In this document: in pieces, positions 41,815 to 48,083 of the stretch
Numbering within the stretch: position 1 is the first letter of the stretch
Layout: each line of letters starts with the position of its first letter
DNA from: Macrostomum lignano
Taxonomy: Eukaryota
Assembly (NCBI GenBank): GCA_002269645.1
Contig: NIVC01000029.1
Location: 434,001 to 498,000, forward strand
Length of the DNA: 64,000 bases
Reading direction: 5' to 3'
Made by a program: the position numbers and the translations under genes
The notes under the pieces: generated by a model
Told to the model about the DNA's origin: nothing
Database searches by the model: none
What the model saw: the letters and a program-made list of their open reading frames with translations, nothing else

Positions 41815-44800
41815 TTACAATATTGAGCATCGAGAATCTGCGGATTCCTCGCGAGCCTTGTCATCTTGTCCTCTCCATCTGGATGCTGCGGCTCCACTGC
41901 TGCTGCTGCCTCGTCTAAAAAAATTTAATGAGGGTTTCGCTTACTAGATGTTGTGGTCTTGATGATTTTGGCTTCGCAGGCACCCGCTACCTATAGTTTG
42001 AGCGACTTCAGCACTACAGGCGACACTTTCATACGATTTTCAAAACAAACAGTTCTAAAAACAACCTTGAGAAAGCTTTAAAATTAAACTTAAATCACTG
42101 CTCGGGCTTTTTAGAAATTTCCCCTTACTTACTGACTACTTTGACGACCAACTGACGCAGTCGACATGTCATGATAATGAGCCCGAGTTTTCTCCCATTT
42201 CAATAGCGATATATGCTCAGCGTGCAGGCCGTCAGATTGATCCGGCGAAGGCAGTTCAGGCTTTACTCTGATTGACGATCGCTGCTTCAAAGTGCTTGTT
42301 GCCGGTGGTGCCGGACTGTCCACGTGGTTCTGTTGCTTGTCTTGCACAGTCGACGTTGCAGCCGTTTCGACAAAGTGTACGTGCAATGCGTCTTGATCTT
42401 TGGGCAAAACTGTCGGTTGGGCGTATGAGGAATTAACTGACGTATCAGGTGCAGGTAGTGTCACTTCCGGTGATGAAAAAGACGATCGTTGGTCTTGTTC
42501 TCGCTGTTGCTGTTGTTGCGCTTCCGGTTGCACATGCGTATCTGTTACAGGTCTCGGAGCTTCTGGTTGTACTCTTACAATATCCGGCTTAGAAACAACA
42601 GGTATTTCTTTTGGTTTCCCACCCAGCAGCAGTAGCAAATGCTTCATCTGCAGCTCCAGATTCGCCAGTTTCTGCCGCTGCTCGTAGATTTCAGTTTCCA
42701 ATCGTTCGACACCGAATGAAGCGTCGGATTCCAGTCGGGTTAATTGACCTTTCAGCTCGGTCTCCAAGCTATTGATGTGCTCTCGTAGGTCTCTGCAAAC
42801 CTCCTCGCCGTTCTCCGCTATCTCGTTTTCCATGTGCGCTTTAAGAGCGTCAGCATCGCCTCGATGTCCTTCTACTGAGCGACGCAGTTGCGCTCGACAC
42901 TGACGCAGCTGCTCGGCCTGGTAGGTCAGGAAGCGGCGATACGCCGCCGGGTAGTTGGCGAATTTTGACTGGTTCTGCCACCAGACCGACTGCTGCTGCT
43001 TCTGAAATGTGATACCAAATTAAATGTACTGCAGCGTTGTTACTTTTGAATTGATTTATGATTTCTACGACTGTATCCCAGCGTTATGGTTACGCTCGTA
43101 TATCCCAGTGAACTTGTTATATCCCAGCGTCTCAATTAGCGTTACCTCGGCCTCTTCCTCAGTCGGCAGCCGGGGCACTTCCCGAAAGCACGGACACCTT
43201 CTGAGCAGCTTCCAGGCGTAGTACGGGAACGACAGCGGCGGCGGAATGGGACTGATCTCAGAGAATTCCTGCAACAGCTCGAATTGGTTCTTTCGCCACA
43301 GTCCGTTGGCTTTGGTGGCCATCTGACTAACCGTATACGTAAACAGCGCAATCAGAAGATTCCACATCACCAGATTGACAATTAGCAAATAGAAGAATAT
43401 TAGAATTCCATTATAGGCATTGTTGCCGCCCAAATCTGCGCAACCAAGACCGGTTGCTTCCTTGCTCGAGTTGCACGAAGTAAATAGCGTGTTCTCAAAC
43501 AGACCGAACATAAGCGACACTGGCAAAGTGAATATCAGCGTCAAAGACTGTTCGTCTCTGGCGTCTGCGAAAGCTGGAAACAGCAGGTTGAAAAAGAACA
43601 CGCCGAATGAGTAGATTAGAACAAACATTATTAGTACGAATGGTAGCAGGTCTTTGAATATCAGACTTTTCAGGATGCAAATTTTTGGTCCTGTGACTCG
43701 GAAATAGCTTAGCAGTGCAACAAATCGAAAGCCGAGTAGTAAGAACGAGGTGCTTAATATCACCTGGCAGCTGCGGTATAGTGAGGCATCGACCACTCGA
43801 CCCAGCAGTTTTAAAACGACTCCAGCCCACATCAATGAAAAACCACTGATGTCGAAGTAGTTGAACAAATCTGTAAAATACAGCGGCACCCGCAGTCGTT
43901 TGTGTCTAATGTAAACGTCCATTATTGCGCTTTTATTTAGAATGTTATCCACTTCCTGTAGTGTTAATGACAGAGCGTAAGCCAGCAGGATGATATCAGC
44001 GGCTGGATGCTCTAGATTCCACTTGAAATCCGTCACGTACCAGGCAAAGTACGCGAGAAAGACGAGGTAGAAAGTCATGTAGATGCCGAACCGTTGTTGA
44101 ATTGAAACTTTCGATCGCTTATTCAGCACATTGCACTGCACTTGGACGCCTTGATCCCAGGGCAGCGGGGGCGGCTTGCGCCACTGCCTGTCTACCAGCT
44201 GACTAATGCACTCGGTAGCGTAAAGATCATCGCAGTCAAGCATCTCCACCATGTCCATCACGGACATGAAATTTCGATTTTCATTTTTGTTTCGCTCTTC
44301 AAGCCGTTTCGCTTGTCTGGAGTGTCGCTTGTGCTTTCTGATCGCCTTGCCCTCCGCCTCCAGCTCGTCATCGTCGCTGTCGGTCTCCTCAGCGTCGTCA
44401 TCCGCTATCATAGGCACCGGCCCCGGAAACTTCGGCCCTAATACGTTCTTCTCGTCCGTAAAGTTTGCCGTTAGGTACTTGAACAGTAGTCTTCTCTCGG
44501 TAGCGTGTGCGTTAACGCATAGATTCTCGAGAACATTTACTACTACATTTAGCGCCTTGTCTCGAACTCTTTTCAACTGTTCGTTCCTCATCAGCTCAAC
44601 TTTCGGTCTCAGGTGAATAAGCAGTCGCAGAGTCTCTGGTATGATGTCGAATTGAGGCAGAAGCATCAAATCCGATAGTAGCTTCGGTTTTTCAAAGAAA
44701 ATAGCGCATTCGATCAGCGTCAAATGCTCAACAAAGTCCTCCGAGAGCATTCGGAATTTGTCCAGATCTTTAAAGCTTCTCCGCTGTTGTGCCTCCGATT

Positions 44801-47800: not shown

Positions 47801-48083
47801 CGGCTGGACCAGTTAGAACACCCTGTAAGCGAGCGGCGATGTGTACGATGGTGTCATTCTCTGGGTTTCTAACGGACAGGCAGTCGGCACCGAGGCGGGT
47901 CAGCAGGAACCGCAGCACTGTGAGATCCTCATCTTTGGCTGCTGTCAGAACCGCATGAGTCACCTCTGGATCGCATTTTATTGTCGCAGTCTGTAAACCC
48001 GACCGAATTTTATCGCATAAGCTATTTTGAGTATTCTCATCCTTCGATTGGATGGCCTGGAGTAGCTTGTCGTACAATCGCAT
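41815..48083 (-). CDS. Ankyrin-repeat TRP-family cation channel with TRPM-type channel/TRP domain, C-terminal coiled coil and CaaX, about 1968 aa
   Basis: Exons (-): 48083-43146 (donor GAG|GTAACG), 43001-42133 (phase 0 in, CA|GTAAGT out), 41914-41815 (ends ...DSRCSIL*). More than 20 ankyrin-like repeats (TAAHYAALNERS, GDTPVHLA), six hydrophobic segments, GPKI S4-S5 linker, NLLIALFTYT...W..NQF.L..EF....PIPPP. The track's start at 48098 is GTG; the first ATG is 48083. A probable 5'UTR exon ends at 48595 and splices to 48116. Confidence 0.85.

Follow-up and report, generated by a model that had tools for sequence, protein, structure and literature searches.

We analysed a 64,000-nt stretch of Macrostomum lignano DNA (contig NIVC01000029.1, positions 434,001 to 498,000; hereafter the window, numbered from its first letter) and found that a three-exon gene on its minus strand, at 48083..41815, encodes a product of 1968 amino acids (aa) with a long array of ankyrin repeats in front of a TRPM-like channel region. 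We put the probability at about 0.8 that this locus is a functional M. lignano gene for a TRPM-lineage channel subunit, and that the subunit belongs to the flatworm branch typified by TRPM_MCLZ of Schistosoma mansoni. TRP textbooks describe the melastatin (TRPM) lineage as being without ankyrins.

The minus strand at 43065..48098 is a single open reading frame (ORF) of 1677 codons, in which the first ATG lies at 48083 (MRLYDK...) and a splice donor (GAG/GTAAC) at 43146; these are the bounds of exon 1. A first-pass annotation, made from the sequence alone, had read 43146-48083 as an ankyrin array joined to a channel. The array and channel read there are real, and the interval equals exon 1 exactly, within one uninterrupted ORF. 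The spliced product is 100% identical to PAA93362.1 (BOX15_Mlig023275g2, a "hypothetical protein" of Macrostomum lignano in GenBank), and a second copy, PAA90912.1, has 98.6% identity to it. The junction across intron 1 is backed by the identity to PAA93362.1 and by the paralogues, which continue with WWQN..YP..Y..FL.YQA..LR; exon 2 reads on in frame with KQQQSVWWQNQSKFANYPAAYRRFLTYQAEQLR. Since the GenBank gene models of the M. lignano assembly were built from RNA-seq transcript assemblies (PMC5730564), and since PAA93362.1 is identical to the spliced product, array and channel share a single transcript model, as the first-pass annotation had supposed. No mention of the gene id Mlig023275 turned up in the literature that we searched.

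43146..48083, minus strand: exon 1 (aa 1-1646), with the start ATG, ankyrin array, linker, channel and TRP helix; from the ORF and identity to PAA93362.1
43002..43145, minus strand: intron 1 (144 nt, GTAAC...TTTCAG, phase 0)
42133..43001, minus strand: exon 2 (aa 1647-1936), with conserved C-terminal helices, a long coiled-coil-like helix and a low-complexity tail
41915..42132, minus strand: intron 2 (donor CA/GTAAGT, acceptor TTTTAG)
41815..41914, minus strand: exon 3, the final 32 aa and TAA
45129..47981, minus strand: ankyrin-repeat solenoid (aa 35-985, ~26 repeats; from Pfam, AlphaFold and Foldseek)
45834..47981, minus strand: ten tandem double-ankyrin units (aa 35-750, 71-72 aa each; from register and alignment)
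44124..45128, minus strand: helical linker (aa 986-1320), family-conserved (LRLVDP..LPDR.., ELDS..LRS, QFDIIP)
44166..44732, minus strand: MHR4-like part of the linker and pre-S1 (aa 1118-1306), with QFDIIP (aa 1144) and QLVDRQW (aa 1295); from hhalign
43707..44102, minus strand: S1-S4 voltage-sensor-like domain (aa 1328-1459; from alignment to nvTRPM2, 6co7, and a conservation table)
43329..43706, minus strand: S4-S5 linker, S5, pore helix, filter, pore loop and S6 (G1465-P1466 to NLLIALF)
43209..43328, minus strand: TRP helix (W1596...E1606) and post-TRP PPPL (aa 1614-1617)
42888..42983, minus strand: conserved C-terminal segment WWQNQ..YP..YRRFLTYQAEQLR (aa 1653-1684)
42627..42869, minus strand: long predicted helix (aa 1691-1771), coiled-coil-like, the presumed assembly helix; from AlphaFold

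The hydrophobic segments of the protein are confined to aa 1332-1586. With Pfam giving no channel domain on this protein, we identified the channel by phmmer searches against the PDB. All 60 matches listed for the channel part were TRPM chains (E from 1e-19 to 5e-5); the best was nvTRPM2 (1e-19), followed by TRPM8, TRPM5, TRPM4, TRPM3, TRPM1 and TRPM7. The channel scored about 72 bits against TRPM2 and 0.9 bits against NOMPC. NOMPC is the best PDB match of the whole protein, via the ankyrin repeats only. The match to TRPA1 is limited to the ankyrin region (aa 151-712), and no TRPA chain is among the channel matches listed. As judged from these comparisons, the S1-S6 core and TRP helix are of TRPM type, as the first-pass annotation had it, and we reject membership in TRPN, TRPA or TRPC.

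Every motif that had been quoted at first pass is present: QLVDRQW (aa 1295-1301), FRVTGPKI (aa 1461-1468), a pore-loop cysteine pair (C1537/C1548, in the segment CNSSKEATGLGC at aa 1537-1548), NLLIALFTYT (aa 1575-1584), WRKNQFELLQEF in the TRP region (aa 1596-1607), and PIPPPL (aa 1612-1617). The second cysteine, C1548, is present in 77 of 82 TRPMs. The S4 arginine is R1453, the S4-S5 linker carries G1465-P1466, and the filter region reads M-F-G1527-L-F-E. In the alignment, E1377, N1380, N1408 and D1411 correspond to the Ca2+-site residues E893, Q896, N918 and D921 of nvTRPM2, and E1606, the fifth residue of the site, corresponds to the TRP-helix glutamate of nvTRPM2. The residues of a TRPM2/4/5/8-type Ca2+ site are thus kept, and we predict such a site here.

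The N-terminal domain that defines melastatins is missing. We found no Pfam match to LSDAT/SLOG on the 1968-aa protein, and a SLOG hidden Markov model (HMM) built from five TRPMs did not match the protein either, though it gave 41 matches elsewhere. By these searches the SLOG domain, that is, melastatin homology regions (MHR) 1-2, is absent, in line with the first-pass annotation. The Pfam model for MHR3/MHR4 (PF25508, TRPM2-like) also has no match on the 1968-aa protein. Between array and channel, however, is a linker that phmmer detects in about 30 paralogue clusters. An hhalign comparison of the family linker (aa 1118-1306) with the linker of the short-ANK and TRPM_MCLZ channels (described below) gave a probability of 90.5% (E = 1.3e-6), and the latter in turn matched TRPM MHR3/4 at 99.9% (E = 8.7e-31). 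Because an MHR4-like piece of the TRPM N-terminus appears to survive, the protein, on these alignments, is not a bare splice of ankyrins and channel. The first-pass annotation had called the gene domain-shuffled: the combination of ankyrins with a TRPM-type channel stands, but the MHR4-like segment is kept, and the array is not tied to TRPA or TRPN.

TRPM_MCLZ (Smp_333650) is the target of meclonazepam in Schistosoma mansoni, a protein of 1380 aa encoded in three exons (PMC10788528, PMC11731825, PMC12861061). Experiments have shown it to be a channel for Ca2+ entry; it carries ankyrin-like repeats at its N-terminus and lacks MHR1/2-SLOG (PMC10788528, PMC11731825). Together with orthologues from flukes, tapeworms and monogeneans it makes up a "TRPM-like" clade (PMC10788528, PMC11731825, PMC12861061). 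To find relatives of the M. lignano gene, aa 1048-1646 were searched exhaustively against 1.8 billion representatives, with clusters at 50% identity, and 563 homologues reached E<=1e-3. The full combination of ankyrin array, linker, channel and C-terminal segment recurs in about 30 clusters (hereafter the long-array family). In the next tier (85-146 bits on the channel), ankyrin repeats are present and SLOG is absent. This tier includes an M. lignano short-ANK clade, with 4-6 repeats, the second half of PF25508 (TRPM MHR3/4) and Ion_trans, and a clade from parasitic flatworms (Opisthorchis, Dicrocoelium, Fasciola, Fasciolopsis, Paragonimus, Heterobilharzia, Schistocephalus, Mesocestoides, Anoplocephala and Protopolystoma). 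Canonical SLOG TRPMs (from octopus, sea urchin, rotifer and choanoflagellates) scored 50-80 bits.

By its sequence features, the parasitic, neodermatan clade fits the description of TRPM_MCLZ. It shows the published S4 pattern R-x-x-(H/Y/F), whose last residue is Y in flukes and F in cestodes (PMC12861061, PMC10788528); it carries the published auto-annotation ("TRPM7-like" or "TRPM member 7"); and a gene model from Opisthorchis with two modules agrees with the reported alternative exons 3a/3b of TRPM_MCLZ. In these Opisthorchis viverrini models (P0033/P0161), two consecutive channel modules follow one ankyrin region, and S4 reads R-T-L-N in the first module and R-T-L-H in the second. The double module is likely a read-through of the mutually exclusive TRPM_MCLZ exons 3a/3b (PMC12861061).

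A neighbour-joining (NJ) tree built from the channel domains of 132 sequences (299 columns, simple distances) recovers the long-array family as monophyletic with 100% bootstrap support and splits the ankyrin-bearing flatworm clades from all SLOG TRPMs with 86%. Two motifs outside the transmembrane region go with this split. The linker motif QFDxxP occurs in 21/27 sequences of the long-array family, 9/14 of the TRPM_MCLZ clade and 7/11 of the short-ANK clade, and in 0/40 SLOG TRPMs. The post-TRP motif FLxYQAxxLR is found in 17/27 long-array sequences, 7/11 short-ANK sequences and 0/40 SLOG TRPMs; in its longer form, WWxN..YP..Y..FL.YQA..LR, it is a C-terminal motif common to the short-ANK TRPM-like clade and absent in SLOG TRPMs. 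On the tree and these motifs, the long-array family groups with the TRPM_MCLZ clade, as a paralogous sister group and not as an orthologue. The first-pass annotation had instead placed the channel outside the standard subfamilies; in those words this view is not supported, given the 86% grouping with known TRPM_MCLZ-type channels of flatworms and the two shared motifs.

The M. lignano protein resembles TRPM_MCLZ in having ankyrin repeats in place of SLOG/MHR1-2, an S1-S6 of TRPM type, a TRP helix, a PPP motif, C-terminal helices on the cytoplasmic side, three exons, QFDxxP, the S4 arginine, and the Ca2+-site residues. The two differ in size and in repeats (~1300-1400 aa with few detectable ankyrin repeats, versus 1968 aa with ~26), the M. 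lignano linker is much further from MHR3/4, and the filter regions differ. With canonical TRPMs (TRPM2, TRPM8, TRPM4/5 and TRPM3) the protein shares NLLIAxF in S6, the tryptophan and glutamate of the TRP helix, PPPL, the pore-loop cysteine, the Ca2+-site residues and, as it appears, an MHR4-like pre-S1, and their transmembrane core is its best and only strong match. Unlike them, it has no SLOG/MHR1-2, NUDT9H or kinase, and instead has ~26 canonical ankyrin repeats. TRPN/NOMPC (5vkq) also places a long ankyrin solenoid (29 repeats, versus ~26) before a six-transmembrane channel, but the channel domain here is not TRPN-type, and if the two were alike in function, for example in having a gating spring, this would have arisen by convergence. 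In TRPA, 14-18 ankyrin repeats precede a TRPA-type channel, which the M. lignano channel is not. TRPS (TRP soromelastatin, the type of C. elegans ced-11) carries SLOG and Nudix domains but lacks ankyrin repeats (PMC7306681); it too is a divergent relative of TRPM, and the M. lignano protein is the reverse of it (ankyrins and no SLOG).

The phylogeny of TRPM and TRPS treats the melastatin lineage as ankyrin-free (PMC7306681), and we found no long-ankyrin TRPM in the papers on TRPM evolution (PMC13143021, PMC7306681) or in a preprint on choanoflagellate TRPs. TRPM_MCLZ is a known precedent for this class of architecture. An array of NOMPC length, the apparent retention of MHR4 and so large an expansion in M. 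lignano are undescribed in the literature that we searched.

The whole protein has Pfam matches to ankyrin families only (Ank_2 at E = 4.9e-61, in 10 stretches). The double period of ~70 aa that was noticed at first pass corresponds to the ten 71-72-aa units at aa 35-750. These double units hold 20 of the ~26 repeats; degenerate repeats (about 6) carry on to about aa 985. Pairwise identity between the units averages 34% and reaches 55% at most, and their consensus is ..GRTA.HYAALNERS.SALLWL......F...D..GDTP.H.AF.KQD...V..LVEKLG.DCL.L. AlphaFold modeled aa 1-1000 as 26 helix pairs, with a predicted local distance difference test (pLDDT) score of 73.8. When this model was searched with Foldseek, erythrocyte ankyrin-1 came first (1.5e-20) and NOMPC next (1e-19), then AnkB, latrotoxin and fly TRPA1. 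Judging from the model, the likeness of the array to ankyrin-1 and NOMPC is generic to long solenoids and does not tie it to TRPN or TRPA. Paralogues have anywhere from 3 to 11 double units, and the long array looks like an internal amplification of the two-repeat (71-aa) unit; the variation in number points to amplification within the genes themselves.

Behind the TRP helix, the C-terminal segment is conserved in paralogues. AlphaFold predicts the long helix that follows it (model residues 832-912) at a pLDDT of about 60-75. The protein has no Pfam match to the TRPM tetramerisation domain.

All of the ~30 long-array clusters with a named source are from M. lignano. The gene belongs, as far as this search tells, to a large lineage-specific expansion of at least 30 clusters at 50% identity, which the first-pass annotation had raised as a possibility. 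A word-indexed homologue search gave 7 M. lignano matches and a profile version with distant members gave 6; both were too insensitive. Several paralogue models in the database are fragments, and two paralogues are nearly intron-less (P0005, with 963 aa in 2999 bp, and P0003, with 707 aa in 2124 bp). A tandem cluster of genes was considered and rejected: there is no second family copy in the 64-kb window, and none within 10 kb at either of two paralogue loci (L002 and L003). Because these loci have no second member within 10 kb, the expansion is dispersed there and not tandem. A precomputed Pfam list gives PF23317 on long-array paralogues and on TRPM_MCLZ orthologues (P0001, P0009, P0190-P0192 and P0212-P0216); when we scanned P0001 against Pfam ourselves, it did not come up.

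A duplicate of this locus (L001, on NIVC01000100.1) holds an intact copy of the gene. The two loci are syntenic, in that the same Kelch-like gene flanks both on one side; a large low-complexity gene lies on the other side. Between the loci, the gene is 97.5% identical and the flanks are 87-93% identical. The copies differ at 41 synonymous and 26 non-synonymous positions, for a ratio of non-synonymous to synonymous rates (dN/dS) of 0.19. In the channel region there are 7 synonymous differences and 1 non-synonymous, and in the ankyrin region 22 and 12. Purifying selection has acted on the whole protein, array included. When L001 is compared to 35000-56000 of the window, divergence in the intron (6.1%) and between genes (7-13%) exceeds the synonymous divergence of the gene (3.1%), which suggests constraint on synonymous sites or gene conversion over the coding region.

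Several observations weigh against assigning the gene to a TRPM_MCLZ-type channel. Pfam Ion_trans stays below threshold on the protein, though it is reached on paralogues. The filter has F-G-L, not F-G-Q or Y-G-E, and threonine replaces the glycine in 8 of 20 paralogues, which leaves selectivity, and even conduction, uncertain. The S4 position +3 from R1453, which tunes the pharmacology of TRPM_MCLZ, is alanine, not H/Y/F. AlphaFold gave a poor model of the linker and channel (pLDDT 55.8 and predicted TM-score 0.38, from a 12-sequence alignment), and the Foldseek matches of this low-confidence model are weak (TM ~0.23), with 21 TRPM chains first, then TRPC and NOMPC. A direct hhalign comparison of the family linker to TRPM MHR3/4 gave just 43% (E = 2.5e-4). 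The channel scored higher with a broad TRPM profile (163 bits) than with a profile of the TRPM_MCLZ clade (124 bits), although these group-HMM scores are not decisive because profile depth differs. The tree is a simple-distance NJ tree, and long-branch attraction among fast-evolving flatworm sequences could affect it. Finally, the first-pass annotation had a distal coiled coil within 43146-48083: a long helix is indeed predicted, but it lies outside that interval, in exon 2, and its heptad signal is weak.

Could the ankyrin-bearing flatworm channels instead form an older TRP family of their own, which lacked SLOG from the start and whose sister is TRPM or TRPM plus TRPS? The midpoint-rooted NJ tree can be read this way, as it puts the ankyrin-bearing clades outside all SLOG TRPMs, including those of choanoflagellates. 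This outside position is likely a long-branch artefact, though, and the 150 best representatives include only flatworm members. The short-ANK clade also keeps a clear TRPM MHR3/4 (by PF25508 and by the 99.9% hhalign match). Furthermore, some flatworm TRPMs combine an intact SLOG with ankyrin repeats on its N-terminal side (P0045 from M. lignano and P0062 from Clonorchis sinensis), and these may be intermediates between canonical TRPMs and the TRPM-like channels that lack SLOG. A route that they suggest would run from gain of ankyrins through loss of SLOG to amplification of repeats. We therefore consider a separate old family to be improbable.

We give a still smaller chance to a recent shuffle within Macrostomum, in which an ankyrin array from TRPN, TRPA or another ankyrin gene was fused to a TRPM channel exon independently of TRPM_MCLZ. 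An array of ~26 repeats is NOMPC-like in length, NOMPC is the best whole-protein PDB match (via the ankyrins), and the channel prefers the general TRPM profile to that of the TRPM_MCLZ clade, all of which speak for such a fusion. Yet the likeness of the array is generic, with ankyrin-1 above NOMPC and AnkB and latrotoxin after them, and an MHR4-like linker sits between array and channel. QFDxxP and FLxYQAxxLR are common to the ANK clades and absent from all 40 SLOG TRPMs, the bootstrap value for one ankyrin-bearing clade is 86%, and the range of 3 to 11 units among paralogues argues for amplification in place. Finally, it is hardly credible that the gene is an artefact of annotation or assembly, or a pseudogene in decay (a read-through of two genes, or a dead retrocopy). 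The gene is intron-poor with a first exon of 4.9 kb, the region is very repeat-rich, and several paralogue models are fragmentary, but no stop interrupts the ankyrin-channel boundary, the same architecture recurs in ~30 paralogue clusters, the channel is the most constrained region at an overall dN/dS of 0.19, the syntenic duplicate locus has an intact copy, and the GenBank coding sequence comes from transcript assemblies.

If the gene is a TRPM_MCLZ-type channel, as we favor, then an ancestor of the branch would have exchanged the SLOG/MHR1-2 nucleotide-binding domain for ankyrin repeats while keeping the MHR4-like linker, the TRPM core, the TRP helix and the C-terminal helices. In M. lignano, the branch would have grown into a large, fast-diverging subfamily in which the 71-aa unit was amplified to 3-11 copies; the window gene has ten units and about 6 further repeats, ~26 in all, a length otherwise found in NOMPC and ankyrins. 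The subunits may assemble as tetramers through the C-terminal helices. By analogy with TRPM_MCLZ, the channel may be permeable to cations non-selectively, probably including Ca2+, and by analogy with TRPM2/4/5/8, its gating may depend on, or be potentiated by, intracellular Ca2+ at the S2-S3/TRP site. The ankyrin solenoid could have taken over the stimulus-coupling role of the lost SLOG, as a tether to proteins or the cytoskeleton, a compliant element, or a binding platform, and it might relay force or binding events to the TRP helix by way of the MHR4-like linker. The large number of paralogues may serve sensory diversification. A bolder combined proposal, that the long-array subfamily consists of convergent NOMPC-like channels gated by force or a tether, with the solenoid of ~26 repeats as gating spring or tether on a TRPM-like pore and the paralogues as a flatworm-specific repertoire of sensory receptors, and that the ankyrin clade is possibly a distinct TRP family, seems to us unlikely.

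The rest of the window is packed with tandem satellites (17-55-bp units) and GATA, ACAG and TAGA microsatellites, which account for long spurious ORFs and blocks of extreme GC skew. The satellite blocks are at 21-1253, 2315-3731, 7759-8644, 9081-9554, 13206-14020, 16857-18076, 35031-36294, 56955-57715, 58282-59242, 59728-60337, 61093-61895 and 63377-64000. This load agrees with the reported repeat-rich genome of M. lignano. There is also a 1.1-kb inverted duplication with 93% identity, and each copy has the 3' part of a pyridoxamine-5'-phosphate-oxidase-like ORF (PNPOx_N, E = 2.4e-8) beside the same GC-rich satellite. Two related ORFs lie on the plus strand, and neither has a Pfam match; at the position in L001 that matches the longer one is a gene of 1406 aa. 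The other features in the window are as follows.

842-1937, plus strand: first copy of the inverted duplication
25190-26309, minus strand: second copy of the inverted duplication
33669-34712, plus strand: 347-aa ORF, related to the 1277-aa ORF and upstream of it
36535-40368, plus strand: 1277-aa ORF with a high content of K, P, T and A; it contains TPRDKTPAKTPGEK-type repeats and a KKAAVAKEAPVT repeat
56143-56907 and 60481-60948, plus strand: BTB-BACK-Kelch (KLHL-type) exons, with satellite-filled introns between
62770-63252, plus strand: exon with a DNA/RNA non-specific endonuclease domain, EndoG-like (Endonuclease_NS, E = 2.3e-24)

Even if its function turns out to be ordinary, changing the annotation of this gene from "hypothetical protein" to TRPM-like channel is a useful correction. 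TRPM_MCLZ was the first noted exception to the rule of ankyrin-free melastatins, and in M. lignano this lineage would have gone much further, with a solenoid of ~26 repeats in place of the SLOG sensor and dozens of diverged paralogues. If our reading is true, the family is a natural experiment in which a long ankyrin array was placed on a different TRP pore, as well as a case study of how amplification of a repeat unit drives the diversification of receptors. And because M. lignano is free-living and amenable to RNA interference and transgenesis, it could serve as a laboratory model for the little-understood TRPM-like channels of flatworms.

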